Positions 1 to 63,722 of a stretch of DNA of 63,722 nt are shown here, piece after piece. Within the stretch, counting starts at the first letter, position 1; each line of letters starts with the position of its first letter. The notes beneath the pieces are model-generated. The model was given only the letters and a program-made list of their open reading frames with translations. It did no database searches and was not told the origin of the DNA. A program made the translations under genes and the position numbers. The stretch is taken from contig JAKMXF010000036.1 of NCBI GenBank assembly GCA_024704765.1, forward strand, positions 1 through 63,722, in the 5' to 3' direction. This DNA is from Oopsacas minuta (Eukaryota; Animalia; Porifera).

Positions 1-214
1 ATTTCATCGTAACAAATCGTAACTAATTCCTATAAGCTACTTAAGTCTTAATTACATTTGGATATATGGTCTTTCTACCATCAACCAAGGTTGTTACTTA
101 GAAATATTCCAGGTTGCTAGTTGCCCTCCCACCTATTTGGCGACGTGAACCACATAGTTTTTCAAGTCTCACGGATCCAAATGTAGACTCACGTATTTGA
201 GCAAAATCCCAGTA
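1..214 (-). repeat. Left arm of window-terminal inverted repeat
   Basis: Reverse complement of 63509..63722 with 4 mismatches (positions 46, 100, 201, 209; all transitions). Similarity breaks down after 214 and runs right to the window edge. Confidence 0.97.
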
Positions 215-668
215 CTTCTGGTCGAATATTCGGCTAACTTCACACTCTACAGTAATTAAAAATAGACCAAAAGTGACAGCATATACGTACATATGGGCTC
301 AGAAATCTGCATAAATCATCTAATGATTTTTGTTTGCATATACGTATACAGATTAATTACGCTTTATAATTATAATACTGTAGGGAGGAAATTTAAAATT
401 AGCATCATAAGCTATGTTACCACCTAGCACATGTATGAAATTGGCTCAGCAAGATAGTCTTCATTCTAGCAACAAAGTGATAGCAGTCTAGAACAGTGAA
501 ATATCATTCATCACAGCCAATACACACCCAAATATATAACCGTACATCTGTTCAAACAATATATTCCATGCCCTATGGGCAAGTAATATGTAACAGCTAT
601 AAACTGCAACTATTCGGGAGAATATAATGTTAACCTTTGTTATTGTGTCAAAAATGGAAATAATTTAA

Positions 669-959
669 TCATGTTTTGAACACTTCAAGTGGTTCAGCAT
701 GAACATACGTCAAATCAATAGCATTATCAATATCCATATCGAGCTCTCCAATAAGAGCAACGTTATCTCCTCTGATCACATATAGGCCCAGTGAGACTTC
801 TTCCACTCCTACATTATGCGAGTACACTCTCTCTACAGTATTCACTAACACTATATTTATGACTTGATCGTATGCCTTGAGATTGCCTGTAATCATTCTA
901 CCATCTCCAGTTATAACAGCTACTTTCTTGTCAGCAAAGGGTTCCAAAGATGCAGCCAT
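669..959 (-). CDS. LSM8: U6 snRNA-associated Sm-like protein LSm8
   Basis: 96 aa intronless ORF with Sm1 (VAVITGDGRMITGNLKAYDQVINIVL) and Sm2 (LGLYVIRGDNVALIGE) motifs and the LSm8-type acidic C-terminus. Confidence 0.95.
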   Translation of the reverse strand: MAASLEPFADKKVAVITGDGRMITGNLKAYDQVINIVLVNTVERVYSHNVGVEEVSLGLYVIRGDNVALIGELDMDIDNAIDLTYVHAEPLEVFKT

Positions 960-1317
960 GAAACAAGAATTGCTTTGTCAATAGATTGGCTAGAAAATCT
1001 CTTTGTATTTCACCTTTTTCAGAAATGCACACTAACTATATGTTTAATAAAAATGTAATCGGAAATATACGAATTAGTAAAAATTGTCCAATCAACAGAC
1101 CAGGAGTACTACTCGGGGTAGAATTTCAGATATCATTTGGTGTGAAAATAATAATCATATAATAAAAATATACTAATAATATTCAAATCTCTTTACGCCA
1201 TGACTATTAGCAAATACAAATCATGGGATTATTCGGAGAGAGACACTTGCGTACAGAGATATTTGTGTATAAGACAAGTGCACAATTTTGGTGCGACATT
1301 GTGTACAAAGACAAATA

Positions 1318-1966
1318 TGTACAGATTTTCTGTATAGAAATCAGTCTAAGGTTACAGCTCCCTTTTAACTCAGCGAACTACACACCAGTAGAATCTTTCA
1401 TTTGTAATAATAAATAGAATTTCTCTTGTACAGATATACAGTCAAGATCCATTATCTCGAACCCTCAGAGGAAATCAAATTCTGTTCGAGATATCGAATG
1501 TTGAATGTAGTACAAGTATATTCTTTGTTTTAGTAAAAATATGCTTTACTAAACAGAATTCAAGAAAGACTCAAGTTTTAATTGAACCCTAAGCCCAAAT
1601 TAAGAAGATTCTTAATCTAATAGGAAAGTTCAAATTCATTTTTACAATTGATTCAATTAATTAAAAGGGTTTGTCTAACGGGTGATGATCACCATTTTAC
1701 ATTAGTTTAATAGGAGAGGTGAGTATCCAGGATTCTTTGCAAAGCGAAAGCGACCTTTAGATGTTGTATAGGGTATTTCAATACTTATTGGTGTTCATTG
1801 ATTGGAACGATCAGGTTTGAGGTAATGGATGTTGAGTGTACATGTGTACAAGAAGAGAAATTCTATTTATTATCGCAATGAAAGATTCTACTGATGTGCA
1901 GTTCGCCGAGTTAAAGGGAACTGTAACTTTAGACTGATTTCTAAGTAATTACCCAGAAAATCTGTA
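1318..1966. repeat. Diverged inverted repeat pair (old MITE/foldback-like)
   Basis: 1336..1431 (agaaatcagtctaaggttacag...ttctcttgtac) matches the reverse complement of 1846..1942, with weaker extension to about 1318/1966. Confidence 0.8.
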
Positions 1967-2100
1967 CACAAGTGTCGTACTTCCGGGATTATTACGTCAT
2001 CATAAGTGCAAAAAATTGTTCATTCGGTAATAGTTATATGAAAATTCACCACAATGAAAAGATTCTAGAAATATATACATAGAATGAATTCAGACGAAAT

Positions 2101-2346
2101 TCAGAGAGCTAATAGGTTAGATTCCTTCTTCGTGTTAGCTACAATGATTCTATTTTGTCTATCAATAGCTACTCCAGAAGTTTTATCAAACTTCTGATCT
2201 CCTGGTAGCAGATCACTTGTGATAATGTGTATTAGTTCTCCTGAGTTGGAGAATATCTTGATTTGATTTTCATAACAATCAGATACGATATGATTCCCTA
2301 ATGTATCAATTGAGAAAAAGTAACTAATATCACCTGCTGATATCAA
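2101..2346 (-). pseudogene. NHL-repeat beta-propeller fragment
   Basis: FSIDTLGNHIVSDCYENQIKIFSNSG...GVAIDRQNRIIVAN is a typical NHL C-terminus. No ATG start and no upstream continuation found. Confidence 0.7.
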
Positions 2347-3480: not shown

Positions 3481-4069
3481 TCTACAGAGACTCTAAATCT
3501 CTAATCTCTCTATCCCCTTGTTTAAATGTATTTATTATTATTTGTTGTTTATTTCCCAATTATAATGATTAGTATATTTATACATTTATTAGCCTATCTA
3601 GGGTATTTACTAGGCAAAACTGGAAATGTCATGAAATTTCTGGATCCCTGTTAATGGTAAACTTGTTTCAGCTCCACATGATGTCTATCTAAGCATGCGG
3701 GCGGGTAGCATTCATGTCTCATTATCTTATGACGTTATCATTATACAAGGTGGCCAATTCATGAAAATATTTCAATGACTCTACTTGTAAATATGTTAAT
3801 TAAGCGTGTTAAAGGAGGTCTGGTGAAACCCCTTGGGTATGCACTAAAGTGGTATACAGTGTATGCCGGTTATAAGAACATGTATTGCTACTCCCAATGG
3901 TGTTCTTATATCCGGTATCTCTATATTTATATACTATTTAGCATGAGATCTCATACACAAACATCAATCAGCTGATCAGTCTAGCCCTCTCTTGCATTAC
4001 AGTAGGTAATAGATATACATCTGATCATGTAGCCGGTTATAGAGTAGAATTACAAATTTTAACCCCATA

Positions 4070-5381
4070 CAGGGTGTCTAATAAGTTCTGTTATATATCA
4101 ATTCCCCAATAATTTCAAATTTATCCATTGTAAAGCCATGAAACTTTCTATTTTCCTAGGACTTATGTTCCTAATTACAAATTACAAATATCATTCAATA
4201 TAGCCTCCCTTTTTATGAATTACGGAAGTTAGTCTGCTCCGAAACTGATGGACAGCTTTTCGCAGCTCCTCCTGTGGGATTTTCTGCCATTCACTCAACA
4301 AACTAACTTTGAGGGACTCCAAACTCTTGTGAGATTTCGCACAGGCCCTGCTCTCCAAGTTTGCCCAAACAGAATAGTCGAGTGGATTTAAATCTGGGCT
4401 TGATGGTGGCCATTCATCCTTACTTATGAAATCGATATTTTGCTCACGGAACCAACTCTGGGATACTTTTGAAGCATGTGCAGGCGCAGAGTCTTGTTAG
4501 TAAGTCCAAGGATGGTTTTGAAAGAGCTTCTCACCCGCAGACGCGATTTCAGGCTCCAAGACCAGTTCTCTGTACGTCTGGGAGTTTATTTTCACTCCTT
4601 GGGGGACAAAAATCAGGTTTGTCCGTGAGTCTGCCGACACTCCCGCCCATACCATCAGAGAAAGAGGCTTCTGGACTCTATCAATGTACTTGATGCTATC
4701 TGGGATATCCTGACTTCGAGAAGCAAGTATACGGTCGTTTTGACGATTGCTTGCCTCCTCAACGGTGAACAGCTTCTCATCTGAGAAGAGAATCTGATCT
4801 TCAGTCCCAGGAGCGAATCGGGCTTTTAGTTGTATGCATCTTTCGAGTCGCTTACGACGTATGGAGTCGTTAAGATGGTGTACGTTTTTCCGCTTATAGG
4901 ACTTCATTCCTAGGTCCTCTACAACCAATTTCCGCATCGTTTCGTGATTGACACAGAATTCACGAGACATTTTTCGCATTGAACGCCGGGGATTTCTTAG
5001 GATTCGACATCTAACACTATTCTTCAGGGCTGGTGTGCGGGCGGATCTTGGACGACCAATTCGTTTCCTGTCGGACACGCTGCCAGTCTCTATATATCGT
5101 TTTATTGTGCGATAGATCAACATGGGACTCACTTTATCATTTTTTAGCCTTTTTAGAATTTCACTATTGCTAAATCCAGATTCGTGAAAAGTGACAATTT
5201 TTGAACGAATTTCTTCTAACATGATTTTCTGGGAAATCATCAACTTGAATGATATATACTTGGTATAATTTGAAAGAGCGCCAAAAATGCTACAAGAAAT
5301 TCTAGAAGATTACTTCATAAGTATATTAATAGCTACTGTCTAAGGCGCGAAAATGTATAACAGAACTTATTAGACACCCTG
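4070..5381 (-). mobile_element. Tc1/mariner superfamily, maT (DD37D) element, full length
   Basis: Perfect 26-bp TIR CAGGGTGTCTAATAAGTTCTGTTATA at 4070..4095 and 5356..5381, flanked by TA on both sides; 1312 bp. Confidence 0.95.
4191..5243 (-). pseudogene. maT DD37D transposase with one premature stop
   Basis: HTH region, FSDEK, then WTY*QDSAPAH (TAA at 4497..4499 where CAA is expected). The frame continues to SPDLNPLDYSVW...KKGGYIE* at 4191, with 37 residues between D2 and D3. Confidence 0.93.
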
Positions 5382-5975
5382 TATATATATATTCCGGTAT
5401 GTATTCCTCTCATATTATATAAGTGAATAATTCAGCGTTCAGATTTTACCCTGAAATCTTAGAAAAGAGAGTCAGAACAGTATTAAAGAAGAAGGAATTC
5501 TTTCACTGGTAGAGAAGGTATGGAAGAGAGTGAATTCTATTCTGCTAATGAATTGCTAGAATATATAATTAAATTCTAGATTACCAATCGTTATTCAACC
5601 TTCAGATATAGGTGAAAATTGACTGAAATAAAATTTATTTATGCATAATGTATGTATTTACCAAATGTTCTATAATATGATTTGGCGAAACTTGGCTACT
5701 TGTGGCCCATGAGCTCAATGACCAATTTGACGATAGTTGACCAACATGACCAAACAGCCCGGCTTCAGTTTGGTGTGTTCATAACAGAATTTTTATATAA
5801 CGTGTGGCTATAGCAGTATAGCCCATGGGTGTTAGAAGCCCTACTCTATATTTACTGCATATGCCATTCTATAAAATATATAATATTATTTCGTATCTAT
5901 CATCATTCAACTGTAAATAAAAAGCGATCTCGGGAATATCAAATACAAATTGTACGACAAATAAAGTATAACTAT

Positions 5976-9957: not shown

Positions 9958-10406
9958 GAATAACTAGAAATATTAATTATTCAAGTTTCAGAAAATTATC
10001 CCGAAGAATTCCAGAACCTATTACGAATTAGATTATTATTTGCAGAATATAAATATACGTGTGCTAAAGCTGTGAATTATGGAAGCTTTGGACATGTTGG
10101 TATTTGATGTATAATAATAATAATTATTATTATTATAATTATAATTATAATTATTACGCTATTTAGGATAAAATAATCTCAAATGAGAATAATCGTTATT
10201 AGAATTTGTATTATGTAATACATCATTAATTTATTGGAAATTAGTATTCATTGAATTTAACTCGAAATAGATTTTTAGTTGAATATTACAAATTGAAAAG
10301 TTCAACGAAAATGTAAATTGGTTCTTTGACTAAGAATATCCTACAATAGCTCTTAGATTACTATATAACTATCAAATATAATCAAAAGAATATAGTAGTA
10401 TTCATA

Positions 10407-11555
10407 ATGGCTATAAAATTTGTATTCATTTTACAAGATATTCTCTATGGAATTTTCATGGTTGTACTCTTTTTATTCCAAACATATTATATCGGAGCTA
10501 CAATTAAACAATTCAGGAATCAATTGACAGAATTTATAAACACTCGCAAGTTAGATACATTTCAGATAAATACAATAGTCAAATACAAACTTTTGTATAA
10601 CCAAAAGACGATTCTCATCAAAAGTCTATTCATTATATTCATATTATCATATGAGATAGTAATATTTAGTTACGCAATTGTGGATCTTGCAGTTTTTAGC
10701 AAAAATATCAAACATCCTTATGTAATAGAAGAAGTACAAATGATTTCACTGAATTGTTCTGTACATCCGACCTTGGGATATTACTACCATTATCCGGCAT
10801 CTAGATTCTTACCTATAATTCTAGGAATAATGCTATGCAGCTTAATAACTCTCATTTCTATCCTCACTACATTTCTTAAGAAACGATACTATGTCCATTC
10901 GATTCGTACATCCTTGATAAGGTATGCTGTCTGTTGGTGCATTGAAGTAATTGTTCTATTAGCTTGTTGTACAGTATACACACTACCTCTTCTCTTTATA
11001 CTTGCTCCATCACTCGCATTCATCAACTGGGTATACTTCGTATATGAAAGTAAACAACTTGTTTACATTCTGAAAGCTAGAATAAGAGATATTGTGAATT
11101 ATGAATGGGATCGAATGCATTACAAAGAGAGCAGACATTCATATAAGATGTATGTTGTATTCAGTATTATCTACTCATTCGCCTTGCTGAATATGATTAT
11201 TGTATTAGCACTAGATTTAGCGAGACTATTTATTCGTCTTGTGTTACTAGATGAGTGCTATTTTCAAGTTGTTTACAAATACAAATTTGATTTACAACTT
11301 AGTCAAAATTCTATTCAAAAAGTATCCTATTGGACTCATAAATTCGAGTTATATATTTTACCTTTCATTTCCTACTTCTCGTTCAGTACAGTCTTATTTC
11401 CATTCATTGCAATTGTTGTCTGGAATACAATGACAGAATGTATAAAGAACAGAACAACTCCAATTCGTTACACTCCTGTATACGGAGGTTCCAATAGAGA
11501 TTACGGAAGATTAAGACTCAAGGCACATCGTAGGGAACCTTTATTCAGCTTCTGA
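10407..11555 (+). CDS. Lineage-specific multi-pass (about 7TM, GPCR-like topology) membrane protein, copy 1
   Basis: 382 aa intronless ORF with roughly 6-7 hydrophobic segments and an NCS sequon in a loop. No recognisable family motif. Confidence 0.8.
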   Translation: MAIKFVFILQDILYGIFMVVLFLFQTYYIGATIKQFRNQLTEFINTRKLDTFQINTIVKYKLLYNQKTILIKSLFIIFILSYEIVIFSYAIVDLAVFSKNIKHPYVIEEVQMISLNCSVHPTLGYYYHYPASRFLPIILGIMLCSLITLISILTTFLKKRYYVHSIRTSLIRYAVCWCIEVIVLLACCTVYTLPLLFILAPSLAFINWVYFVYESKQLVYILKARIRDIVNYEWDRMHYKESRHSYKMYVVFSIIYSFALLNMIIVLALDLARLFIRLVLLDECYFQVVYKYKFDLQLSQNSIQKVSYWTHKFELYILPFISYFSFSTVLFPFIAIVVWNTMTECIKNRTTPIRYTPVYGGSNRDYGRLRLKAHRREPLFSF

Positions 11556-11618
11556 ATTGTGTCTACTCAAGCTATACTATAAGACAAATCAGACTAATTA
11601 CGTTGTATATCAATAATA

Positions 11619-12929
11619 CAAGGGTTGTTCGATAAATAATGAGACTTTGTTTCATACTTCATATAGTAAACCTATACTTATCATAATTGATTATCAAATG
11701 TTTCGATAAACTCCCCTTTAATTTTATACATCGATTCCATCGTTCTGGTAACTTTTCCAGCCCAGTGGTATAAAATTCTTTAGGGGTCCCTTTTCCCACT
11801 TTTTTATTTCGTACTCTAGCCGTTTGAAATGCCCAATTCTCTCCCCTCGAAGGGGTTTCTTCATCTCTCTAAACAGCCAGTAATCGCTGGGAGCCAGGTA
11901 TGAACAACACGGGGGATGAGGGAGGCATTCGAATCCTAAGTCGTCAATTGCAGCCATTGTCTTGGAGCTTACATGGAGCCTTGCGTTGTCACGTTGCAGC
12001 AATACGCCACGTGTCAACTTGCCTCGCCTCTCACGTTTAATCGCTTGACGCAATTCTTTCAATTCGTCAAAGTAATAATCACTGTTTATAATGGTCTTCT
12101 CAGGCAACCAGTCGAGGTGTATAATTCCTTCCCTATCCCAAAATACCCTTGCCATTCTCTTCCCTGCTGATTTTGCGGCCTTTACCTTGATGGGTAGAGG
12201 TTCATCACGTCTCTTCCACTGCTTCGATTGAGTTTTGCTCTCTGGTTCATAATAATGAAACCAAGTTTTATCCCCGGTTACGATACGATCCAAAAGGTCT
12301 TCCTCTACCTTGTATCTTGAACGTAATTCTCTGCTAACTCTGACCCTTTCGCGTTTTTGTTCTTTTGAAAGAAGTTTTGGGACCCAACGCGCAGTTACCT
12401 TCGACATTTCTAGATCTTCAGTGATAATCGAGTGTAGTGGGCTTTTGATATACCTACTCTCTCTTCTAACTTTCGCAGGGTTATTCGTCTGTCCTCGTCC
12501 AAAATTGTTTGGACCCCTCTCGATATTACTGCGGGCTTTTGAGGAAGTCGGATGACCTGGGCGAGGGTCATCGTGGAGGTCCTCATCGACATTATCACAA
12601 CGTTCGATCCATCTATATATGGTTGCTTTCGAAGGACATTCATCACCGAAATATCCTGCATTTGACGAAGAATATATGAGCCATTATTCCCCTTTTTCCA
12701 CAGGTACCAAATTTTTTGTCGTTTTCCTTCTTTACTAAAATCCATTAGTTAAAAAAGTAGCCTATACAAATGAAACTTTATACTGAAGAATATGCTAGTA
12801 GAGTAAAGTGTATATTGCATAGAAGTTAGATAATCAAGTTAGGCTTGTAATCTGATATTAGGCTTAGAGCTGTATTAACAAGAATATGAATTCGATACGT
12901 TAGTCTCATTACTTATTGAACGACCCTTG
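11619..12929 (-). mobile_element. mariner (DD34D) element, frameshifted transposase
   Basis: 28-bp TIR (caagggttgttcgataaataatgagact, 3 mismatches) with TA duplications at 11617-18 and 12930-31. Transposase pieces lie at 11724..12745 (WVPKLL, TGDKTW, RDNARLH...APSDY; 34-residue spacing). Empty site at 22497. Confidence 0.95.
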
Positions 12930-13074
12930 TAACAAGCCGTTCAGCATACTTACGCTGGGCGGTTTTCGGACCCGTATTCGCCGGATGTACCCTACAAGTG
13001 CTTCATATAATCCTATTAATTTAATGATCAGTATATACGTATTTATTAAATCGTATTGAAAGCGTATTCATATA

Positions 13075-13711
13075 CCGTATTACCTCGAATAATAGCTGGG
13101 GCTTATTAATATCAAGCCGCCTTGAGAGGGAAGTTACGATTTTTGTAAACACAATAATTTCTAAATAATCATACAAATGTGCTTACATTATGTCTCTTTA
13201 TCCTAAAAAACAGTAGATAAATCAAAATATACGGGAAATGACGACTGTAAGCAGTTATTAGGGTGTTGGTATCGTGCGATCGATCACGATACATTATTGA
13301 CGATCGGGAATGATCGCCCATAATTATGCAAGCAGTGATCTAACGGAAGATCGCGATCATTTTTTCCCGAAAACTTTCGATGAGAATTTGAAAATTTCGA
13401 ATCTATACCCGAAATTGTTTATTCAAATGTATGTACTAATTTTCATGGCAATCAAACTGGTAGATTTGCATGCCCGCGACGGAAAGACGGACACATGTAA
13501 TAGAGCATAAATTTCAGAAAAGTGATCGGATAAAATGATCGTGAACGTGATCGCGATCCTTTTGGTGGCTGGGTCGCAATCACGATCTCCAATAATTTTG
13601 TAATGAACGAACGTGATCGTGATAGCGATAATAAAGTTGGTGATCGACTAATGCCCCATCAGTTATTAGTTTTTAGGAGCCTCAGGAGGGCTATTATTCG
13701 AGGTAATACGG
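13075..13711. mobile_element. TA-flanked MITE (Tc1/mariner/pogo-type), copy 1
   Basis: Perfect 22-bp TIR CCGTATTACCTCGAATAATAGC, TA on both sides, no transposase. Confidence 0.88.
13259..13658. mobile_element. hAT-like non-autonomous element nested in the MITE
   Basis: Ends TAGGG.../...CCCCA (imperfect 12-bp TIR), 8-bp flanks GCAGTTAT/TCAGTTAT (7/8), dense CGATC/GATCG subterminal motifs. Confidence 0.65.
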
Positions 13712-14199
13712 TATTTGTAAAAATTATTATATAATCTACAATTTATCACAGAATACTTTCGTATAAAATCGGGCAATAATTAGTAAAGAATCTACCCTAG
13801 ATGAACTGCCACAAACAGTGAAACGTGATAGCATTGTTCGGCGCCCCTACTGTCACGCCAAAACTGGTCCAGGACAAATCTCAAGGATAGCTTTGTACTA
13901 AAGTTGACAAATATGTCGCTTTCTCCTTGGAAAAAACCACTGGTAAAATTCCTACTTCAGAAGATCTGTCCTGTTACTCCTGTACTAATCCTTTTAGGGT
14001 AAAGGAATTACAGTTATAAAATGTAAATGTAAATATTTAAAAATTAGGTGTATAAATAATAAATATATTTATAAACTTCATCAATCCATCTCTCGTGGCT
14101 GCAAAGCTATCGGTGAGGCAGTCCGTTCGAGCCCGATCAAAGCGCATGAATGGAGACTCAGTTATGATTGAATACCCGAACTATACTATGAGAAAATAA

Positions 14200-15720
14200 A
14201 GGATACTGCATATCGAATGTGTAGTTTCCGAAAATATAGTCGAAAGCCACAAGGTGGATCAAGAAGCAAAAAATGAATGAATCAGCTATGAGCTATCTTC
14301 TACACCTAATTTAATCTCGTACAGACATATCACTTCTGTTCATGAATGAAATATGTTCGCATTAAAGAAAGGATTTACAATTATCAGTGTCTACTATTGC
14401 ACGATGTCTAGAAGATTGGCTTATTACTTAAAAAGACAGTTGAATTGAAACCACAAACAGAAATTTAGAAGAGAATTAAGTGGCAAGACATATATAAGAT
14501 TTATATTGTATATAATATGCAACTTTATTGGCTAAAATTATATATCAGAGCTGATAGAATTACAATAAATAAGAATAAATAGGACATACAATATTATTAC
14601 TATACTAAACTGTATCTATTGATACTTGTAACGACTTTATTATAAGAGAAATTGTTTCTAAATTGAGTGAGTATTGAAATGTCATCAGCTGATCTTGTTT
14701 ATACAATTTTAGTGAGTGAAAAGCTTGAGAAAAACTAAATTTATTGAAGAGTGATTGACGAGAATAAATCAAAAGCAATTCGCGTTGAGAGGAAATGAAA
14801 CAGTTGATCGACATGAAATCAGAAGGTGTTGAGAAAATTGGATAGTAATTGGACAGAAGTAAATGAGAGAAAGGAGAAGAGTAGAGAAGCCAAGAAATTG
14901 AAAAAACATTGAGCTGAAATATAGCATACACAGACTGTATAGTTGTAGCAAACAGATTATAAGTTTTCAGAGGATACTCCTATTCAACTGAAGTGGAGTT
15001 CTCGTGCTAGCATGTTGTTAACAATACTATGAATAAAAGGATTTATGTAGCTGATTTTATCCTTATAGAATTCAGATATTCTCTAAAGAAGGAGATTGGA
15101 TCAGAAGTGTCAAAGATGAAGAAATGGTTAGACCAGAAAATATCCTCATTATTCAACTTCCGTTTTCATACAACAATGTGGCGAGTGTATCCTAAAAACA
15201 TTATACTTTAGAAAAGAAAACTACAAATCTTGTCAATATATATCTCATAAGAGGTATCCGTACAGACAATATCAATGTATATGTAGATGTATACTGTATA
15301 GAGAGATAACACTGATAATGGTAACTCTTGATTTGAAAGAAGAAATATAATAATCCTAATCTCATTTCCACGAACTACAGAAACTAAAATCAGAGATATT
15401 TCATAAGCGGAAGGAGAATTCTATGTTTTGTTATCTGATACAGAATATCCTCTCCAAACATTTTCTAGAGAAGGAACTCTCCCTCAGATGTATTGTTACG
15501 AAAGATTTATTGAATGATGCTTTCTACATCTGTTTGGATCAACAACATAGCATAATTCTATCTGATTGAGGAACCAGTAAAGTGAAGATATTCTCAAATG
15601 AAGGTGAACTGATATTTCAGTTCTGTAATAAGGGAACAGCTGTATGAGAATTTACAATCCTCAGAGGAGTAGCAGTAGATAACTTAGGATCTATTATTAC
15701 AGTTGATTGGAGGCATAATC
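14200..15720 (+). pseudogene. Degenerate coiled-coil + NHL-repeat gene
   Basis: Fragmented frames with NHL remnants (YICLDQQHSIILSD*GTSKVKIFSNEGELIFQF) and many stops. Boundaries approximate; the 5' part is duplicated at ~23770..24063. Confidence 0.5.
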
Positions 15721-15725
15721 ATAAA

Positions 15726-16138: not shown

Positions 16139-17828
16139 CAATCATATGCTACAAGCAATCTCTCAAGCTCTCTTTATTGAACAATAATTGTATATTAATA
16201 TGCTCTAACTTTCTAGAATTTTGATTAGATGTGTTGTAATGGGCGAGGGACAGTACTAACTATGTATGTCTGAAAACGAAATGGTTGCTTAATATGTGAG
16301 GAGTTATTTTTAGGATCTTCTAGTCAAATTGGACAGCTTGACGTAGACCACTAGAGATAAGATCTTGAAATGCTAACTTCATGAGGATACCATTAAAAAT
16401 TATTTGGGTAACAAAAATTTGAAGGTAGCCAAATTGTTTCTTGAAATATTCACATGCAGATTTACAAATGTGTGGGGCCTTTCTCATATGTTGTTACTGA
16501 TCATATGGGGGTCATCAGACCCCTGAAGCTATTCCTATGGATAACTTTTACTTTAAGCTAGCAAATATAGAAATACAGTAGAACTCGGATATAACGTTTT
16601 TCGGTATTAATAATCAATTTGTGTGTTAAATTTGGAAAAAAAAGTATTTATCGCTATGATGATATGAAATATTTGGGTTTCTCAGAAGAAAATTTCTTAC
16701 AAATTTGTATATTCAACCAACAACCTTAGGGCATAATATAATCAATAATTATTGAAATAACAGTTGTTGAAAGAAGTGGCTATACATATTGACTCCAAAC
16801 TCTCTAATTAAAGGACATTTACATTTGAAATTATAAATGGGGAAAGGGGGGTATCTGGAGACTCGCCGGCCCGACTTCCCCCACTTATAGAGGTTCTACT
16901 ATAATTTCAATATTTTCACGGCCTCCGTCTATAAAATAATCGAAAGATAATTCAATGGAAGCGAGTAATTACATTAAGAATTGCACAGAAAGGGTGCAGG
17001 AATTGACTCCATATCTAGGTGGAGTATGAACATTTTTACGACAGGTTGCGTCGGTCATGAATTGCCAAAACTCTATTCTTTAATCCCGGAAAAGACTTTA
17101 TTGATCTTAGAATTCATTCAGTGGTGATACGACTGTAATGACGGATAGAAATCCACATTCCTTAGAGACACAATTAACTCCTAGATACGATTATATAAAC
17201 CAAGATTTGGCTCCTATTTCCAATGAGATAACTGCCAGAACATTTCAGTGTCAGAGATGTGCCCCTAGTTACCACCCACGTTTACAGATACTTACCCCTT
17301 GGAGAAAGATCATAAACCTGTGACTAACAATAAAGTTATTAAGCGTGAGCGATCTAGAAGTCAAATGATAATAATATGTTTCATAAATGACTTCCAATGG
17401 TTGACAGTTCAACGTCGATTTTGCCATGCATATCGAACGGAATATTATATGTATTTGACAGTCCTATTACGAATTAGATTATTATTTGCAGAATATGAAT
17501 ATACGTGTGCTAAAGCTGTGAATTATGGAAGCTTTGGCCATGTTGGTATTTGATGTATAATAATTATTATTATTATTACGCTATTTAGGATAAAATAATC
17601 TCAAATGAGAATAATCGTTATTAGAATTTGTATTATGTAATACATCATTAATTTATTGGAAATTAGTATTCATTGAATTTAACTCGAAATAGATTTTTAG
17701 TTGAATATTACAAATTGAAAAGTTCAACGAAAATGTAAATCGGTTCTTTGACTAAGAATATCCTACAATAGCTCTTAGATTACTATATAACTATCAAATA
17801 TAATCAAAAGAATATAGTAGTATTCATA

Positions 17829-18977
17829 ATGGCTATAAAATTTGTATTCATTTTACAAGATATTCTCTATGGAATGTTCATGGTTGTACTCTTTTTATTC
17901 CAAACATATTATATCGGAGCTACAATTAAACAATTCAGAAATAAATTAAGAGAATTTAGAAACACTCGCAAGTTAGATACATTTCAGATAAATACAATAG
18001 TCAAATACAAACTTTTGTATAACCAAAAGACGATTCTCATCAAAAGTCTATTCATTATATTCATATTATCATATGAGATAGTAATGTTTAGTTACGCAAT
18101 TGTGTATTTTGCAGTTTTCAACGTAAATATCAAACATCCTTATTTAATAGAAGAAGTACAAATGATTTCACTGAATTGTTCTGTACATCCGAGCTTTGGA
18201 TATTACTACCATTATCCGGCATCTAGATTCTTACCTATAAGTCTAGGAATAATGCTATGCAGCTTAATAACTCTCATTTCTATCCTCACTACATTTCTTA
18301 AGAAACGGTACTATGTCCATTCGATTCGTACATCCTTGATAAGGTATGCTGTCTGTTGGTGCATTGAAGTAATTGTTCTATTAGCTTGTTGTACAGTATA
18401 CACACTACCTCTTCTCTTTATACTTGCTCCATCACTCGCATTCATCAACTGGGTATACTTCGTGTATGAAAGTAAACAACTTGTTTACATTCTGAAAGCT
18501 AGAATAAGAGATATTGTGAATTATGATTGGGATCGAATGCATTACAAAGAGAGCAGAGATTCATATAGGATGTATGTTGTATTCAGTATTATCTACTTAT
18601 CCGGCTTGCTAATATTGATTTTTGTAGTGATGGGAAATTTCGCGGACTCTATCCTCCGGCTTTTGTTTATTAACGATTGCTATTTTGAAACTGTTTACAA
18701 CTACAAAATTCCGATAGAAATTGATGAAATTTGGAAATCCCGTATTTCAAATTGTATCAGATACATTACCCATTATATTGCCCCATTCATTCATTGTGTT
18801 AGTATAATCCTATTAATATCCCCTCTCATCCTGAATATTGTTTGGAAGTGTTCAACACAGTTTGTAAGGAATAGAATAACTCCAATCCGTTATACTCCAA
18901 TCTATGAAGGTTATAACGGAGATCGTAGTAGACCATGGCTCAAGGTATATGCAAGGAAACATTTCTTTAACTGTTGA
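17829..18977 (+). CDS. Multi-pass membrane protein, copy 2
   Basis: 382 aa, near-identical to copy 1 up to VVFSIIY, with a strongly diverged C-terminal third. Confidence 0.8.
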   Translation: MAIKFVFILQDILYGMFMVVLFLFQTYYIGATIKQFRNKLREFRNTRKLDTFQINTIVKYKLLYNQKTILIKSLFIIFILSYEIVMFSYAIVYFAVFNVNIKHPYLIEEVQMISLNCSVHPSFGYYYHYPASRFLPISLGIMLCSLITLISILTTFLKKRYYVHSIRTSLIRYAVCWCIEVIVLLACCTVYTLPLLFILAPSLAFINWVYFVYESKQLVYILKARIRDIVNYDWDRMHYKESRDSYRMYVVFSIIYLSGLLILIFVVMGNFADSILRLLFINDCYFETVYNYKIPIEIDEIWKSRISNCIRYITHYIAPFIHCVSIILLISPLILNIVWKCSTQFVRNRITPIRYTPIYEGYNGDRSRPWLKVYARKHFFNC

Positions 18978-21291: not shown

Positions 21292-22434
21292 ATGGCATTG
21301 ATTTACAAACTACAAAATATCCTATATGTGGCAGTTATTATATTATTCCTTTTATTCCAAACATATTATATCGGAGCTACAATTAAACAATTCAGGAATC
21401 AATTGAGAGAATTTAGAAACACTCGCAAGTTAGATACATTTCAGATAAATACAATAGTCAAATACAAACTTTTGTATAACCAAAAGACGATTCTCATCAA
21501 AAGTCTATTCATTATATTCATATTATCATATGAGATAGTAATGTTTAGTTACACATTAGTGTATTTTGCAGTTTTCAACATAAATATCGAACATCCTTAT
21601 GTAATAGAAGAAGTACAAATGATTTCACTGAATTGTTCTGTACATCCGACCTTGGGATATTACTACCATTATCCGGCATCTAGATTCTTACCTATAAGTC
21701 TAGGAATAATGCTATGCAGCTTAATAACTCTCATTTCTATCCTCACTACATTTCTTAAGAAACGATACTATGTCCATTCGATTCGTACATCCTTGATAAG
21801 GTATGCTGTCTGTTGGTGCATTGAAGTAATTGTTCTATTAGCTTGTTGTACAGTATACACACTACCTCTTCTCTTTATACTTGCTCCATCACTCGCATTC
21901 ATCAACTGGGTATACTTCGTGTATGAAAGTAAACAACTTGCTTACATTCTGAAAGCTAGAATAAGAGATATTGTGAATTATGAATGGGATCGAATGCATT
22001 ACAAAGAGAGCAGACATTCATATAGGATGTATGTTGTATTCAGTATTATCTACTCATTCGCCTTGCTGAATATGATTATTGTATTAGCACTAGATTTAGC
22101 GAGACTACCTATTCGTCTTGTGTTACTAGATGAGTGCTATTTTCAAGTAGTTTACAAATACAAATTTGATTTACAACTTAGCCAAAATTTCATTCAAAAA
22201 GTATCTAATTAGACTCATGATTTCGAGGTATATATTTTACCTTTCATTGCCTACTTCTCGTTCAGTACACTCTTAATTCCATTCATTGCAATTGTTGTCT
22301 GGAATACAATGACAGAATGTATAAAGAACAGAACAACTCCAATTCGTTACACTCCTGTATAAGGAGGTTCCAATAGAGATCATGGAAGATTAAGACTTAA
22401 GGTACATCGTAGGGAACCTTTATTCAGCTTCTGA
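21292..22434 (+). pseudogene. Multi-pass membrane protein, copy 3 (nonsense-disrupted)
   Basis: The ORF stops at KVSN* (22212) where copy 1 has KVSYW. The frame continues homologous to copy 1, with a second stop (TPV* vs TPVY), to EPLFSF*. Confidence 0.85.
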
Positions 22435-22639
22435 ATTGTGTCCACTCAAACTATGCTATAAGGACAAATCAGACTAATTATGTAGTATATCAATAATAAC
22501 AAGCCGTTGAGCATACTTACGCTGCGGTTTGCGGACCGGTATTCGCCGGATGTACCCTACAAGTGCTTCATATAATCCTATTAATTTAATGATCAGTATA
22601 TACGTATTTATTAAATCGTATTGAAAGCGTATTCATATA

Positions 22640-23277
22640 CCGTATTACCTCGAATAATAGCTGGGGCTTATTAATATCAAGCCGCCTTGAGAGGGAAGTT
22701 ACGATTTTTGTAAACACAATAATTTCTAAATAATCATACAAATGTGCTTACATTATGTCTCTTTATCCTAAAAAACAGTAGATAAATCAAAATATACGGG
22801 AAATGACGACTGTAAGCAGTTATTAGGGTGTTAGTATCGTGCGATCGATCACGATACATTATTGACGATCGGGGAATGATCGCCCATAATTATACAAGCA
22901 GTGATCTAACGGAAGATCGCGATCATTTTTTCCCGAAAACTTTCGATGAGAATTTGAAAATTTCGAATCTATACCCGAAATTGTTTATTCAAATGTATGT
23001 ACTAATTTTCATGGCAATCAAACTGTTAGATTTGCATGCCCGCGACGGAAAGACGGACACATGTAATAGAGCATAAATTTCAGAAAAGTGATCGGAAAAA
23101 TGATCGTGAACGTGATCGCGATCCTTTTTGGCGGCTGGATCGCAATCACGATCTCCAATAATTTTCTAATGAACGAACGTGATCGTGATAGCGATAATAA
23201 AGTTGGTGATCGACTAATGCCCCATCAGTTATTAGTTTTTAGGGGCCTCAGGAGGGCTATTATTCGAGGTAATACGG
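22640..23277. mobile_element. TA-flanked MITE with nested hAT-like element, copy 2
   Basis: Same 22-bp TIR and the same nested CGATC-rich insert as 13075..13711; copied by the segmental duplication. Confidence 0.88.
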
Positions 23278-32225: not shown

Positions 32226-32326
32226 ATCCCATTACTTGATCTCAAAGGCTTTAGTTATACTGAAACTCAATTATGGTTAATCTGTCTGTGTTTTTCTTAT
32301 TTGAATCTAATTTAGTTTTTAGTATT

Positions 32327-33735: not shown

Positions 33736-34768
33736 TCATTGTCACATGACCAGATATATCTTATTTCTCTATTACTAATCCTGATTTATCTAGGGTCCAG
33801 TAGAGATTTGGTTGTAGTATGGGTATAGTTCCGCTTCAAGAGGTCATAGAATGCGTTACGATATATACTTAGAAAGTAAGAAAATATAGTTTAAATAATT
33901 ATGCATGTGTTTATTACTGCAACCCATGCAAAACGTTTGGATATCCAACAGCGTGGTCATTATTGAGGGAATTATACACGGTGGAGTAGCCATTGGAACC
34001 TGAGGCGAGTGAGCAATGTTAATAATCTTAGTTTAGTAACTGGTAATCGCATCGGTGTTGTATTGTTATGGTTGTAGATAATATTCAAATTCCTAGTTTT
34101 ACAACAAACCATTTTACAATGATTCTGAATAAATATACAATCGTTAAATTGGGATAGAAATCCCGATTAACCGATTCAATGTCCTAATTATCCGACGATT
34201 TTCTATGTAAAAAATCTGTTCCCAAACCATTGTCCCGTTTAAGCGGATATCCCAACTATCCGAGTCCCGATTAAGCGGCTTCCACTGTATGTACTATGAA
34301 GGAAATGGTTGCGAAATACAGTTAACATCCTATTACTCAAACCCTCAGGGGAAATCAAAATAAGTAATTTAACTTTTCATGTCCTATCCCACTTAGTTTT
34401 AAATAACTGTGAATATACTAGTGTTATTGCATTGGATCAATTTTGTAATAAATAATTAAAATTGTTTAAATTCCTGCCAAGGCAGTCTATTATCTATATT
34501 GGGAATAACAGAAGATCGAAGTGCATGTATTGTTTCTCCTCCACTAAGTAAATGAGGCTAACATCTGATATACCTTTTTATGCTTGACCTTCCTCTCTAC
34601 ATTAATCAGAAGATATTATTGATTTCATTAATTTGCTATTGCTATGGAATTCTTAACTCATCTTATTAGCTCAATATTATATTTAATTGAACAGTGGTTG
34701 AAACTGAATATTATTAATATCTTAATAGTTTAAAGTTAATTTACTTTGCACAGTGATATAGAATGGAT

Positions 34769-35779: not shown

Positions 35780-36695
35780 TTTAAACCTTGAAACACATTT
35801 TGGTTCTACATACAACTAATCATATACGATAGAAAAGATATTCACGACATAAATAACATCTTGTTAATATAGAGTATATGGTAGGAGAGCGATTTATAAT
35901 CGAATTAGAGATTACTATTTAATATTTAAAACATTCCAACAAATATTCGAAGTTAGTATCAACCACAATACAGACTTGATCTCAGATATTTAGCAGGCAA
36001 ATACATTACACATTTAGACTTAGGTAGCTAGAATAATCATACTAGCTGCCCACGTCTATTAAACCCTCACAATGTTTCACTGAATTGTAATAATTTCTAA
36101 ATGATTTAGCAGCAAATAGATTAAAGTATAGAATTTCCATCAATCATAGGGTAGGAGAGAAGGGGGGTTGGGAGGGGCAGGTATGCTTTTGAATATTTCA
36201 AAAGCAGTGTTACAATTTTTGGAAGCCAAATTTATTAATCTACTAAGCCATATGCCACAACCTCATTAAAAACAGCGTGGAGATCGCATTAGCAACTATC
36301 TTTTTGTTTGTAAGGGAACAACTATTCCACTAGATAAAATTGCTAAATGAGAATATTGAATAGGAAAAGGCTGATGAACGGTGAGAAATCTCTAGGATAG
36401 TTTTGAATTACTTCTTAGAAAATAAAATTGTATTCTACACCAAATTACCCCCTGAGAAGGCGTTGAAATCTAGTTTCTAGTATCGTAGCAGTTTAGAGCA
36501 ATTTCTATACGAATATTCAAATTTTAAATACACATATTTGGACAATTATATTCATAAAAACAAAAGTAAATTTACATATCAGGAACCGAAAATGCGAAAT
36601 TCGGAATGAGAGTACTTTGTACACCTAACTTAAGAACCAAATCTCTAGCATCAATTTCAAATATGTGCAAAAAGGTGTGAAAATATGATAAATCA

Positions 36696-46300: not shown

Positions 46301-49300
46301 CTGTTACCTTCCTCAAAGAGATCATAAATGAAAGAATTAATAGTAAATCCTGGAAAGAATGAGTAAGTGATGGTGAAAGCCATAATATTAAGAGGAGTAG
46401 TTGGAGGGAATGTAAGTATAACAGGATATAAAGAAGGATCTGGTGTCAGGGGGAGTGCTATAGTGAAACTGAATTGTACTTCTATAACACCAGTCAGAGA
46501 AGGATCTGAAGGAGCAATAATGTATTAAGAAATAATGGAAACAAATGTTAGAAAAATGCAGCTTGAGGGGACCACAAGGCGGAACCAACACTAGGGTTAT
46601 GATAATAAGCACAAAGATTTAAAATTAGACGCAAAAAGGTGTGAAGTAAATGATAAAACCCTGGACAATCTATACCACAAATAGTCTCCTTTTCAATTGT
46701 TTTTCGAAAAACCAATTATTGACAGAATACTCATTTCAGAATATTTTCTATTTCTTTACAATAATCCGATGATAAGTTTTCATTTGTTCATCTTCGTTAG
46801 TATTTAGGAATACCTGAGATTCAAATTTCCAACAATTCAGCATATACGTAGATTGGCCGATTATTGGAATTTTCGAAAATCTATAAGGTGAAAATTACGT
46901 CATTATTTAGTTAAAAGTATGAATTTTGCCAAACTATATGGTGAACCCATGACCCATCCAAAAAATGATGTACCATGTTGCGCATGGGTCTGTGACTCAT
47001 TTGCAGCTCTGCTTCAATCAATTTTCGATATACTAACATATAAATGTATAGATTAATACCGATTCAATAGTATAGACAATTATTTAAAAACTCACCTAGA
47101 TCGCTGGTGTATGCCATTTCTACAACTCCTAAATAATCTCTAATAACTATAGGAGGTTGAATAGTACTAGTAATTGCACGTCCTGTTGTGTTATCAATAG
47201 AAATAGAATCAGGATCTCCAATCAAAGGCTTGATAGAGTATACAACCGTAAAATTTGGTGTAATAGTTCCTGCAGTAAACAGATAGAGACCTCCAACTCT
47301 ACTATTAGTGGTTGTAGCAGTATATTCAGTTGCATTTGATTGGATAGCATCATATACCTATAGAACAATCGTATATAATGAATCGTCGTGGTGACGTAAT
47401 CAACGGCAGAGCCAGGAATTTTGAAAAAGCGGAGGGATTGCAACACAAACCGCAGCCTAGATCTGCTCTTGCTAATACAGTTGAAATCAGATTTTGCTTC
47501 TTTTCGCGTGCCTTTTGAGGGGCAAAACACCCCATTTCGACTACACATTTGTTATTCTTGATTGTTCAATGGTAATCATGAAAATCCTATCAAATTGAGT
47601 TCGTATTATCTATGCTACTAAATGGAATTAATCTGTATGTTTATTTATTAATCGCATATTCGGAATTTGGATTGTTTGGATTGTTTGGATTACTTTTATT
47701 CCTCTAGTGCTTGCCTATTATCGGTTTGTTAATTATGAAACGAATAAATACAAAATAATTAATCTGTATGTACAGGGTGGCTCCAAAGTTCTGATACAAA
47801 ATCACGATTAATATACAACCATTATCAGGAATTATTCTCAATCGTTTGCTCTTCTATGACATACCTTATACGCTTCCTACCATTAGTATTTCAATTTGGT
47901 GTATTCTATTTCGAAAAAAAATTGTGATTGACGATGGAATCTGAGAGGTCAGCAATTATTGAGTTGCATGTAGCGGGAAAAAGTCCATCAGAAATTTCGA
48001 AACTGCTGAATATTGCAAAAGGACATAGGGCATTATCTACAGGACGATAAATCGATATAAGGAAACTAGGGACACTGTAGAGAAGCAGAGATCTTGTCGT
48101 CCATGATCTGTAACGACCCAGGTCTTAAGAAAGGGGTGCGAGAACGGTTTCGGCGGAACCTCACCATCCGATGAGGATAATGGCCTTGGGAGCTAAATAT
48201 ATCTCGCCGAGCAATACAAAAGGTTGTCAAAAGGGACCTAGGAATGCGCTCCTTTAAACGCAAAAAGGTACAGTTCCTATCTGGGTCGGTGAAAGAAAAG
48301 AGAGTATCCGGGAGCAAGAGCCTACTTGCTCTACACGCTATTGGGGTTCTTGAAAATATCCTTTTCTCAGATGAGAAAATTTTCACCATAGAAGAGGCTA
48401 CAAATAGCCAAAACGACAGAGTCATCTCGACCTTAGTTTCAGCGATCCCTGATAAGTTCAGATATATCAGTCGGATGAAGAAACCGCTATCGGTGATGGT
48501 TTGGGCTGGGGTCTCTGCTGTTGGCCGGACACCACTGATTTTTATCTCCTCAGGAGTGAAATCAATGCCAAAACATACTGAGAGCTTGTATTAGAGCCTG
48601 TGGTAAAAGGTCTGAGCCAGACCATGTTTTCTGGACAGCCATTTGTCTTCCAACAAGATGGTGCCCCCGCCCATACGGCCAATACGACCCAAGATTGGCT
48701 GAAGCACAATACTCCCAATTGTATACACAAGGATAAATGGCCACTATCAGTCCCGATTTAAATCCCATGGACTTTTCCGTATGGTCTATCTTGGAAAACA
48801 AGGCTTGTTCTGTGTCACATAACACAGTTAGCTCTCTAAAGATTTCCTTGTGTCGAGAATGGGAGAAGATACCCCAAGAAACTCTGCGTGCCGCAGTAGA
48901 AGGATTCCCAAACAGAATCAGGGCTGTCATTTCCAAAAAGGGTGGTTGTATTGAATAAATGACTAGGCAATATCTTCCTAATAGTATGTATTAATTATAT
49001 ATAGAAAATCAATAATGTAGGTCATGCTGAAAAATATTATAACAAAATGGTTTGTATCAGAACTTTGGAGCCACCCTGTATGTATACGTATACGAATTTT
49101 AGCTGGGCATGAATAACTGAGGATACGCAGCGATCTAACAATCGAAACGCGCTAGTAAGATATTCATTGTAAATAATTGAATATTGTAAACAAACCTACC
49201 GTGAAGTTGTATGGAACATTCACTGTTGATAGAACGTCTACACCGTTTTGAATCAACTGAACCTTAATAGATCCTGAATACGTTCGCACTTCATTGGGGG

Positions 49301-61108: not shown

Positions 61109-61863
61109 TGAATGAGGATTATTGTACCAATTCGCCGTTAATTATTCATCCCCGCCAGTCCCAATTTGAATCTCCCGCTCTGACAAATTTACATACAGTA
61201 GAACCTCTGAGATCAGGGGCAGTCTTGTCTTGAGGGTGCTCAGCAGGGCTGCCGTGGCTATGGAATTTCTATTCCCATCTCATTCCAACAGGATTTCTGT
61301 GGGAATTCCCATGGGTTTTCTCATAGGTTTCCCATATGGCAATTTACATAGCAAGAAAATGATTCCTATTCCTATACCCAAGGCAACCCTCGTCCTCAGT
61401 TCTCAGAAATAACAAAACTCCATGGAAGTTCTATTTGGTACATACATAAGTATTGAGATCCTTCAAGTTAGTGAATCTAAATGTTTTAATGTGGCCATTA
61501 TCTGACACCTCGTATCCATGACCCATGAGCTATGACATATATATTACGCATCGTGTGATTCATTGACTCTCACAATTTTGAAAATCAAACATAGTGGTAT
61601 AGTGTAACACAACATCATGAACACACTAACACTCATCATTTATCTTTAACAGTATTGGATAATACATTCCAATTCAATTCGGTCATTAGTTAAGGACTCC
61701 TGGTGATCATATCACGTTCATACTAGCCAACTTGAGTGAAGAAAAAAGCGGGACGGAAAGCATTAAATTTAGCGGGGACATCTCAGGACCTAAAATCGAG
61801 ACAATCAACAAGGCTTTTTATAGACTCTTATTATGTAAGTTATTGATTATTGCACGATAGTAC

Positions 61864-62229
61864 TAGGGATCGATAGGGGGCACAATTATGGCCGGGAAAA
61901 CTGTACCGATTTTCGGCCGAAACCGGGACCGAGGCGATCCCTAGTTCCTCAAGTACAACCTAAGAGCTGTTAGATTTGAGCACCTCCTGACGTAGTTATT
62001 CCTAATCAACACGTCGAGGAAATTGTTGATGATAGTGAAGATTTAGATAGAGTATAGAGATACGTATATATTTTAGATTCAGTATCTCGCATTTAAATTT
62101 CTTTGTTCCAAACCTATGATGTTTTGCTTTAGAAATAACTCTTAGCATAAATTTCATTAAACACCCCGGCTGGCCAAGGGCCGGGTTCTCAACTTTTGGC
62201 CGTGGCCGGATCGGATCGGACGATCCCTA
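61864..62229. mobile_element. hAT-like non-autonomous element (TAGGGATCG ends)
   Basis: Left end TAGGGATCG at 61864; right ends CGATCCCTA at 61935 and 62221. Outer 8-bp flanks GATAGTAC/GATACCAC (6/8); CCGG-rich subtermini. Confidence 0.5.
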
Positions 62230-62981
62230 GATACCACAATAGAACCCAACCTATCAGACCCCAAATGCTGGGGTCAACCAGAATTTGGATGGTAACTTGG
62301 GGTTATTTAGTATTACTAGTATGTATACACATATATTTAACTGTAAATGTAAGTATCTTAATACATGACACAGTCAATCGTAATTACTACAATCTATAAC
62401 GTAACCTCTACTTTACAATTTAGTTAGTCCTGTTTTTAATTATGAATTTACATCATTCGCTAAAATGCTTCATTCATTTGCCAATCTGTATGTACAAGTA
62501 ATAATCCAAGAGAAACATATACAAACATAAGAGGTACTCCGCATTAGGTACACACATTATGAGATTTGTTTAATAAATTGAGAACTGAGTTGAATCTATT
62601 ATATAATTTGTCGATGGTTTGTATTTTGTACGGAATTAATTGAAGAACTGGTAAGAGCTACAAACTTGATCAATAAATTGATGGGATGTATGTATGTACT
62701 AAATTTAGTTAAAAGGTATCTCATGGCCTCTTGATAAGTAATGACCTTATTCTTTGCCATCTGGTTGCCCCTCAGCTAGGTAGCTATTTCTCCGTGATAG
62801 CGCCTCTGTAATTCCTAAAGTGATATCTACACCATACATTTATTTCATACATAACATTATATTATAGTTTAACTATGCAATTTCTAACAGTAAATTTCAT
62901 TAAAATCCATCCTTAATTATCAATTGAATTAAAGTTTGATGTATTTCTTAATCGGTCTATATCGTAGTATCCAATCAATGG

Positions 62982-63405
62982 TATTAAATCTCAACTGTTA
63001 TCTGTGTCTGTCTGTCAGTCTGTCTGTCTGTCTGTTTGTTTATCCGTTGTCAAGGAAATGATTTTAGGTATGCAATTTTGAAATCGTTGCATAACTAAGT
63101 ATTTATTGTGTTTATCAAAGAAGTAAATAGAATCCATTAATACTTCACTATACATATTGAATATGGTGAATCCGATTTTCACACTTATGGATTAATCATG
63201 TGTAGATTTATTGTTGTTTTTATGAATATAAAGTAAACAAATTAGCCAAATGTAAAAATATTCCTACGGGCTTGCTCTAAACGGCTACACAGGGGTAACA
63301 CAATACTCTAACCAGAATTTCGCATTTTCAAGTTTCTCATGTGATAATTTATTATTGTTTTTATGAATGTAAATACGTCGAGTTCATCGCGAAGCGACGA
63401 GCCAA
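62982..63405 (+). mobile_element. Helitron-like repeat, copy 4
   Basis: tattaaatctcaac..(TCTG)n..atccgttgtcaaggaa... ending cgcgaagcgacgagccaaaggctcgt. Confidence 0.6.
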
Positions 63406-63508
63406 AGGCTCGTTACCATTAAAATGCTAATTCCAGCTACCTCATTTCGTTATAAATCACTGTAAAACTTAATTTCCTGAGAAATTTTAAAGTTGGTAGG
63501 TTAAATAA

Positions 63509-63722
63509 TACTGAGATTTTGTTCAAATACGTGAGTCTACATTTGGATCCGTGAGACTTGAAAAACTATGTGGTTCACGTCGCCAAATAGGTGGGAGGGC
63601 AACTAGCAACCTGGAATATTTCCAAGTAACAACCTTGGTTGATGGTAGAAAGACCATATATCCAAATGTAATTAAGGCTTAAGTAGCTTATAGGAATTAG
63701 TTACGATTTGTTACGATGAAAT
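63509..63722 (+). repeat. Right arm of window-terminal inverted repeat
   Basis: Reverse complement of 1..214, 210/214 identical. Confidence 0.97.

Follow-up and report, generated by a model that had tools for sequence, protein, structure and literature searches.

Genes and mobile DNA in the window

The window analyzed here, a stretch of 63,722 nucleotides from the glass sponge Oopsacas minuta, is the whole of one contig (C36), and this contig both starts and stops in a repeat. Between its ends lie animal housekeeping and EGF genes of an ordinary, intron-poor kind. They encode LSm8, urocanase, a RIO kinase, a Tudor protein, EGF/laminin-G proteins, and Prp18, together with an aldo-keto reductase, an S26 signal peptidase, and NHL-repeat proteins, a content that roughly agrees with the 14 or so host genes counted in a preliminary description of the sequence. 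No replication or virion genes are present among them. The mobile DNA of the interior consists of two Tc1/mariner elements of about 1.3 kb (positions 4067 to 5385 and 47771 to 49080) and one mariner DDE fragment. Both elements have TIRs of 30 to 32 nt starting with TACAGGGTG, retain a transposase remnant, and occur in at least 38 copies each.

An inverted repeat at both ends of the contig

Positions 1 to 214 (left arm, plus strand, at the contig start) and 63509 to 63722 (right arm, minus strand, at the contig end) are reverse complements of each other. They are identical at 210 of 214 positions, a match far beyond chance, and the four mismatches, at arm positions 46, 100, 201, and 209, are all transitions. 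Alignment of the arms thus bears out the earlier observations that base 1 pairs with base 63722 and that only four transitions separate the arms, and a search of the window found no other copy of the 214 bp inside it, as had also been reported. Neither an ORF nor an IS was found in the 214-bp arms, and the window ends carry no telomere repeats. A scan of metagenome contigs for the outer 37-mer of the arm gave no hits. We compared C36 with 16 other contigs, and in none of them do the two ends form an inverted repeat; C36 is unusual in the assembly in this respect. End-to-end inverted repeats as a general artifact of the assembly were rejected on the same ground.

Each arm is composite, consisting of an outer low-copy part of 152 bp followed by the first 60 bp or so of a short dispersed repeat, here called repeat S. 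The low-copy part (positions 1 to 152 in the left arm, plus strand) has only three copies in the assembly, namely, this one, the one at 63571 to 63722, and one in another contig, C44, and none of 29 dispersed-repeat loci covers arm positions 1 to 147. The 5' boundary of repeat S is sharp and lies at arm position 153. The repeat is present in at least 40 copies at 80 to 93% identity (57 candidates), and its dispersed copies span arm positions 153 to 281. The copy in the left arm (153 to 211, plus strand) is truncated to the first 60 bp or so and includes an 8-bp stem with a 9-nt loop. The longer copy at the right end (63429 to 63570, minus strand) extends to arm position ~281 to 294 and is shared with C44, which matches window positions 63429 to 63722 over 294 bp at 95.6% identity. 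Searches of the window and of the repeat loci with Rfam (gathering thresholds) and ARAGORN returned no match; thus, the conserved core of S, about 60 bp, is not a known RNA or tRNA.

A third arm copy and paralogy with a 947-kb contig

The preliminary description had proposed that the copy number of positions 1 to 214 be determined in the genome. A search of the sponge's own assembly recovers three full copies only, the third being C44:508887-509091, which is 98% identical to positions 1 to 205 of the left arm. C44 is a contig of 947 kb, and the arm copy is internal there, running on into further sequence. On its inward side, about 2.6 kb is held in common with the right end of the window only. 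This includes an inner segmental duplication (61122 to 62963, plus strand) paralogous to C44:503350-505175 at 95.4% over 1844 bp. The shared block is interrupted by a repeat insertion at 62973 to 63424, an abundant dispersed repeat of about 400 bp that differs from S and has dozens of loci at 82 to 87% identity. The C44 arm copy is a single arm with no partner, and the remaining interior of C36 is not shared.

The left end of the window also has a paralog in C44. A block at 669 to 1620 (minus strand), which includes the LSm8 gene (669 to 959, minus strand), corresponds to C44:501116-502067 at 95 to 97% nucleotide identity, and the two LSm8 ORFs, of 96 amino acids each, differ at three residues. 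The spacer between the left arm and LSm8 (215 to 668) matches only itself in the assembly. In C44, the LSm8 copy lies 1.3 kb from the block shared with the right end, so that paralogs of both window ends are found within C44:501116-509091. The order there is the LSm8 block (window 1620 to 669), a 98% copy of part of an orphan gene, Y (Y[753-1497]), window 61122 to 62963, window 63429 to 63722, and Y. Gene Y, a 248-amino-acid ORF, is thus located outward of the arm copy, and a partial copy of it comes directly after the LSm8 copy. The adjacency of Y to both the LSm8 copy and the arm copy is as expected if the sequence beyond each end of the window likewise contains Y.

The shared sequence is non-TE DNA of about 1 kb or more, is at least 90% identical between copies, and is present in few copies, as is typical of segmental duplications. 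LSm8 and orphan gene Y are involved in a local family of young duplications. Two other interpretations of the C44 region were rejected. (i) The 501- to 509-kb region of C44 could have been C36 in inverted form or an allelic haplotype of it, but the homology ends at window positions 1620 and 61122 without resuming. (ii) It could also have been derived from a giant element by deletion, but the left-end block there has no arm and lies in the wrong orientation.

Contig ends and the assembly graph

The assembly comprises 61,460,524 bp in 365 contigs, in agreement with the published 365 scaffolds, about 61 Mb, and 36% GC (PMC10280926). It was produced with SPAdes 3.9 (--careful, k = 21 to 99), followed by SSPACE, Pilon, and GapFiller; only scaffolds of at least 1 kb that were classed as eukaryotic were retained, and the Illumina and PacBio DNAs came from different adult sponges (PMC10280926). 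It is documented that SPAdes leaves overlapping sequence at contig ends (PMC5481147).

The right arm shows the signature of a k-mer boundary. Its agreement with the C44 copy is complete over exactly the 99 terminal bases and first fails at arm position 100, that is, k + 1. We estimate the chance of such an exact run at about 0.05 to 0.3% for a local divergence of 1.5 to 4.4%. The left arm shares only 45 terminal bases with the other two copies, because it has a private T at position 46, and it would fit the same boundary only if this position were discounted. Four other contig ends were tested, and all of them lie in repeats from the very first base. At one of these, the end of C39, the overlap is limited to the last 99 bases, which are 100% identical to C79:5674-5772 and 99% identical to C348. 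At the other three, no clean run of 99 bases is seen, the longest stretches of identity being 120, 50, and 53 bases. Within C44:509092-516000, no contig end was found that would mark the far side of a supposed collapsed segment.

Origin of the bracketing repeat

We consider it likely that C36 is a complete SPAdes-derived scaffold, each end of which breaks off within a copy of a low-copy segmental duplication, at a shared graph vertex. The base-for-base bracketing was most likely made by the assembler, which stopped in two copies of a small duplicated segment, and the three-copy segmental duplication probably continues past both window ends. From inside to outside, the duplicated unit would consist of variable sequence, repeat S, the 152 bp of low-copy DNA, and orphan gene Y, with one full copy in C44 and two inverted copies at the ends of C36. 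These copies may be identical enough beyond arm base 1 to have formed one shared edge of the de Bruijn graph, which would have been assigned to the long C44 path, leaving Y-like sequence beyond both C36 ends. The C36 path would then end on both sides at one vertex, the 99-mer of arm bases 1 to 99, and ending there on both sides would yield the base-for-base bracketing. Because a plain k = 99 graph would end the left arm 53 bases further out, the model needs bubble collapse and polishing: the private bases of the left arm would have been restored by polishing (SPAdes --careful and Pilon) after the bubble had collapsed. Sequence next to C36 has probably been collapsed or lost in the assembly. 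A contig broken at the same point in two copies of a young dispersed repeat had already been considered in the preliminary description. The break itself is favored by the 99-base identity and the C44 paralogy, but the nature of the repeat has to be revised, since the outer 152 bp represents a segmental duplication present three times and only arm positions 153 to 211 belong to a dispersed family.

The same description had given prominence to a giant transposon, TIR-bounded or composite (Tn10-like), that has captured about 14 host genes and has the 214-bp repeats as its TIRs. An exact inverted repeat at both sequence ends and transposase fragments in the interior are what such an element would show, but we regard it as very improbable. 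The arms contain neither an ORF nor an IS, each being low-copy DNA joined to a piece of an unrelated dispersed repeat, and the transposases of the interior are those of ordinary Tc1/mariner elements, 1.3 kb long, with their own TIRs and dozens of copies elsewhere. The cargo consists of housekeeping genes (those for LSm8, Prp18, RIO kinase, and signal peptidase). TIRs should mark the ends of the unit in every copy, but the lone other arm copy, in C44, has no partner, and the long inward flank that it has in common with C36 is that of the right end alone. What sets the outer edge of the arm is the point where the contig stops rather than a loss of homology, and the termini coincide with the k = 99 graph boundary. 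Further copies or empty sites, the marks of mobility, were not found; there are three arm copies and no second unit, and no large duplicate of the 41- to 61-kb part of the window was present among the scored candidates. A contig that is instead a complete linear molecule (a linear episome, virus-like element, or mini-chromosome) with true terminal inverted repeats would explain why the repeat bounds the whole contig. Its ordinary animal genes, the nature of its ends, which lack telomere repeats, and the occurrence of the arm in the interior of the 947-kb contig C44, with more sequence beyond it, make this origin barely credible.

Inversion is a different matter, because it is compatible with an assembly break in a segmental duplication. 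The arms may be real inverted low-copy repeats, probably longer than 214 bp, that serve as NAHR substrates and flip the 63-kb block, the contig having been broken by the presence of both orientations or by a collapsed flank. The arms are 98% identical and inverted, the C44 paralog suggests that each runs outward into a copy of Y, and two platforms and different individuals were used for sequencing. On the other hand, four mismatches in 214 bp indicate no recent homogenization of the visible part, and the break requires no inversion; we regard this scenario as unlikely. Slightly more doubtful is its stronger form, in which the 63-kb block is flanked by inverted, nearly identical duplications of at least about 1.7 kb (arm plus Y) and both orientations exist in the sponge population as an NAHR-driven polymorphism. 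If true, such a polymorphism would explain why a hybrid assembly of two individuals breaks at exactly the ends of C36.

Taking the assembly break as the preferred reading, the finding itself is ordinary. Contig ends in this SPAdes-based sponge assembly fall at de Bruijn graph vertices inside repeats, and thus the bracketing of a contig by an inverted repeat is not evidence for a mobile element. Its main import is a caution for features that are defined by contig ends.

Comparison with known systems

C36 resembles a composite transposon of the Tn10/Tn5 type, or a giant TIR element, in having inverted repeats around nontransposon genes, but its arms differ in being composite non-TE DNA without IS or transposase modules and in bracketing a unit that has no second copy. 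The Tc1/mariner elements of the window are true TIR elements and provide an internal standard, with which the 214-bp arms share neither the 1.3-kb length, the TACAGGGTG TIRs, the transposase remnants, nor the copy number. With SPAdes k-mer boundaries, the likeness is the exact 99-base overlap of the right end, also seen at the C39 end. C36 differs from these in that its two ends arrive at one vertex, in inverted orientation, an arrangement unseen in the 16 other contigs, and in that the private base 46 of its left arm requires polishing after assembly. Inverted low-copy repeats, or segmental duplications, are classical NAHR substrates. Although only 214 bp of the pair is visible in C36 and the remainder would lie beyond the contig ends, the locus resembles them in its three copies at 95 to 98% identity, in a homology that extends over 2.6 kb on one side and is broken up by transposon insertions, and in involving genes, LSm8 and orphan gene Y, and not a transposable element.

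Inverted ends of contig C36

Comparison of the window ends shows that the left arm (window positions 1-214) and the reverse complement of the right arm (63509-63722) are identical at 210 of 214 positions. Base 1 pairs with base 63722, the mismatches lie at arm positions 46, 100, 201, and 209 (counted inward from the contig end), and no further copy of the arm was found inside the window. Because the match is far beyond chance, the inverted repeat noted in the preliminary description is borne out. Neither arm contains an ORF, and a scan of metagenome contigs for the arm's outer 37-mer gave zero matches. The repeat bounds a complete contig (G000:C36), one of 365 in an assembly that totals 61,460,524 bases; these figures agree with the Oopsacas minuta genome as published, with its 365 scaffolds, roughly 61 Mb, and 36% GC (PMC10280926). 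The genes in the window are animal-type and intron-poor (LSm8, urocanase, RIO kinase, a Tudor protein, calcium-binding EGF/laminin-G proteins, Prp18, aldo-keto reductase, S26 signal peptidase, and NHL-repeat proteins). A separate 745-bp inverted repeat (99%; 31485-32229 and 34765-35509, arms 2.5 kb apart) holds two convergent EGF-domain ORF copies (31206-32225, plus strand; 34769-35815, minus strand).

A third arm copy and a longer paralogy

A third copy of the arm exists within C44, a 947-kb contig of the same assembly (C44:508887-509091), and matches the right arm over 294 bp (95.6%). When C44:480-530 kb was compared locally with the window, a single stretch of 8 kb in C44 proved to be paralogous to both window ends. 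It comprises an LSm8 block (C44:501116-502067, window 1620-669 reversed, 95-97%), directly followed by a partial copy of an orphan gene, Y (Y[753-1497], C44:502051-502795, 98%), and a block from the inner right end (C44:503350-505175, window 61122-62963, 95.4%). The next 3.6 kb (C44:505175-508799) carries ORF fragments that are hAT-like, on a weak match below the Pfam cutoff, and mariner-like, as judged by eye. The arm with a short dispersed repeat, S, follows (C44:508799-509091, window 63429-63722, 95.6%), and then Y. Given this paralogy, with the window gap at 62963-63429 occupied by an abundant dispersed repeat of ~400 bp, the right arm forms just the outermost part of a ~2.6-kb duplicated block. 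The left arm is an island of 205-214 bp adjoining 454 bp that occur nowhere else in the assembly; LSm8 comes next.

LSm8 occurs twice in the assembly (window 669-959, minus strand; C44:501777-502067, L015:1777-2067), with 97% nucleotide identity and proteins differing at 3 of 96 residues. At its end, the C44 LSm8 ORF overlaps with an ORF of 113 aa, which reproduces the C-terminal half of Y at 98%. Y itself is a single-exon orphan ORF of 248 aa (C44:509418-510164, L008:1827-2573) starting 327 bp outward of arm base 1; its N-terminal half is Ser/Thr/Pro-rich, and it has no Pfam match. The first 752 bp outward of arm base 1 in C44 have no second copy in the assembly, and Y is otherwise represented by a partial copy (98%) lying 7.8 kb upstream and by a fragment of 118 bp on contig C82. 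An ORF family (382 aa/306 aa) without a Pfam match forms three repeats at 94-99% in the window (10017-14457, 17463-18476, and 21292-24028), with paralogues at 93% near the C44 arm copy (C44:513772-514405) and two more on contig C300. Its presence in both places indicates that C36 and the C44 region have several young duplications in common.

Composition of the arm

A dedicated search of the assembly found arm positions 153-211 in at least 40 copies (57 candidates) at 80-93%. In the aligned copies of this repeat, S, homology sets in sharply, exactly at arm position 153 (the 5' boundary), and extends 70 to about 260 bp inward; none of 29 dispersed loci covers arm positions 1-147. Thus, the arm is a composite of 152 bp of three-copy DNA and the 5' part of S. 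Truncated to ~60 bp in the left arm (window 153-211), S is longer in the right arm (63429-63570) and in C44; other copies are loci L061-L090. It has an 8-bp stem with a 9-nt loop near its 5' end, followed by several TCTCAC motifs, shows no match to Rfam or tRNA, and may be a SINE, a MITE, or another class of element. The outer 152 bp of the arm are probably the upstream region of Y. Such a composite has the anatomy of a duplicated genomic segment and not of a transposon terminus.

The ends in the assembly graph

The right arm equals the C44 copy over exactly its 99 terminal bases, with the first difference at base 100; the chance of a first mismatch exactly there is estimated at about 0.05-0.3% for a local divergence of 1.5-4.4%. 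Different adults supplied the Illumina reads and the Canu-corrected PacBio reads, which SPAdes 3.9 assembled (--careful; k = 21, 41, 61, 81, 99) before processing with SSPACE, Pilon, and GapFiller (PMC10280926). According to the Unicycler paper, the SPAdes process makes overlapping sequences at contig ends (PMC5481147). The base 99/100 point would be the merger of the right-arm and C44 paths into one k = 99 graph vertex. All four control contig ends lie in repeats from the very first base. One of them, the 3' end of C39 (L036, C39:63417-63515), bears the same 99-base signature, since a match of precisely 99 terminal bases links it to C79:5674-5772 (100%) and to C348 (99%). The longest identical runs at the remaining three are 120, 50, and 53 bases; after polishing and scaffolding, then, not every end shows the signature. 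The C39/C79 overlap represents a k = 99 SPAdes adjacency that could be used for joining or ordering contigs.

The left arm is the weak point of the graph model. Its private T at position 46 limits the identical run to 45 bases, and it has bases 101-200 in common with the right arm, a run of 100, or one k+1-mer. Against the right-arm route, the left-specific stretch with T46 and A100 would appear as a bubble of equal length, a structure that is normally collapsed by SPAdes; in a later step, --careful and Pilon may have used read pairs anchored in window 215-668 to restore the private bases. The exact coincidence of the two ends is best read as a k = 99 graph boundary.

In C44, Y comes directly outward of the arm, and the part of Y from position 753 on lies in the same relative orientation after the LSm8 copy. 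This order looks like the predicted left end (LSm8, 454 bp, arm, Y) minus a 1.4-kb deletion. A Y-like copy probably lies outward of both window ends, in which case the true inverted duplication would exceed 214 bp. Its outer part would have collapsed into the C44 path or have been among the small or unannotated scaffolds that were discarded; only eukaryotic-class scaffolds of >1 kb were retained (PMC10280926). No contig end marking the far side of a collapse was found in C44:509092-516000.

Origin of the inverted ends

The preliminary description named in its headline a candidate giant or composite transposon that carries host genes between its inverted ends. This is not supported, as the arms lack an ORF, the cargo consists of housekeeping genes, no second copy of the whole unit exists, and no large duplicate of window 41-61 kb was among the scored candidates. 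The interior transposase remnants belong to two ordinary 1.3-kb Tc1/mariner elements. One (1.32 kb, 4067-5385) has 32-nt TIRs that are 97% complementary and start TACAGGGTG; its family looks recently active, as about 15 of at least 38 copies elsewhere are 98-99% identical, and its ORF (4497-5243) gives HTH_32 and Sleeping-Beauty-like HTH matches below Pfam cutoffs. The other (1.31 kb, 47771-49080), of a second family, has perfect 30-nt TIRs, also starting TACAGGGTG, at least 38 copies at 87-95%, and a coding region split into short ORFs. A mariner DDE fragment lies at 11724-12407. The C44 region was also considered as a deletion derivative of the unit and rejected, because its left-end block is wrongly oriented and lacks its arm. 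That C36 is a complete linear molecule is unlikely: it contains neither telomere repeats nor replication genes, and an arm copy is embedded in the 947-kb C44.

The inverted ends are best read as an assembly breakpoint within copies of a repeat. The option of a contig broken inside two copies of a dispersed repeat thus holds as to the break, with the repeat refined to a three-copy segmental duplication. The finding is an ordinary one. Since C36 alone among 17 contigs examined has ends that are inverted copies of each other, the genome probably carries two low-copy repeats in inverted orientation, separated by about 63 kb, and pairs of this kind can mediate inversion.
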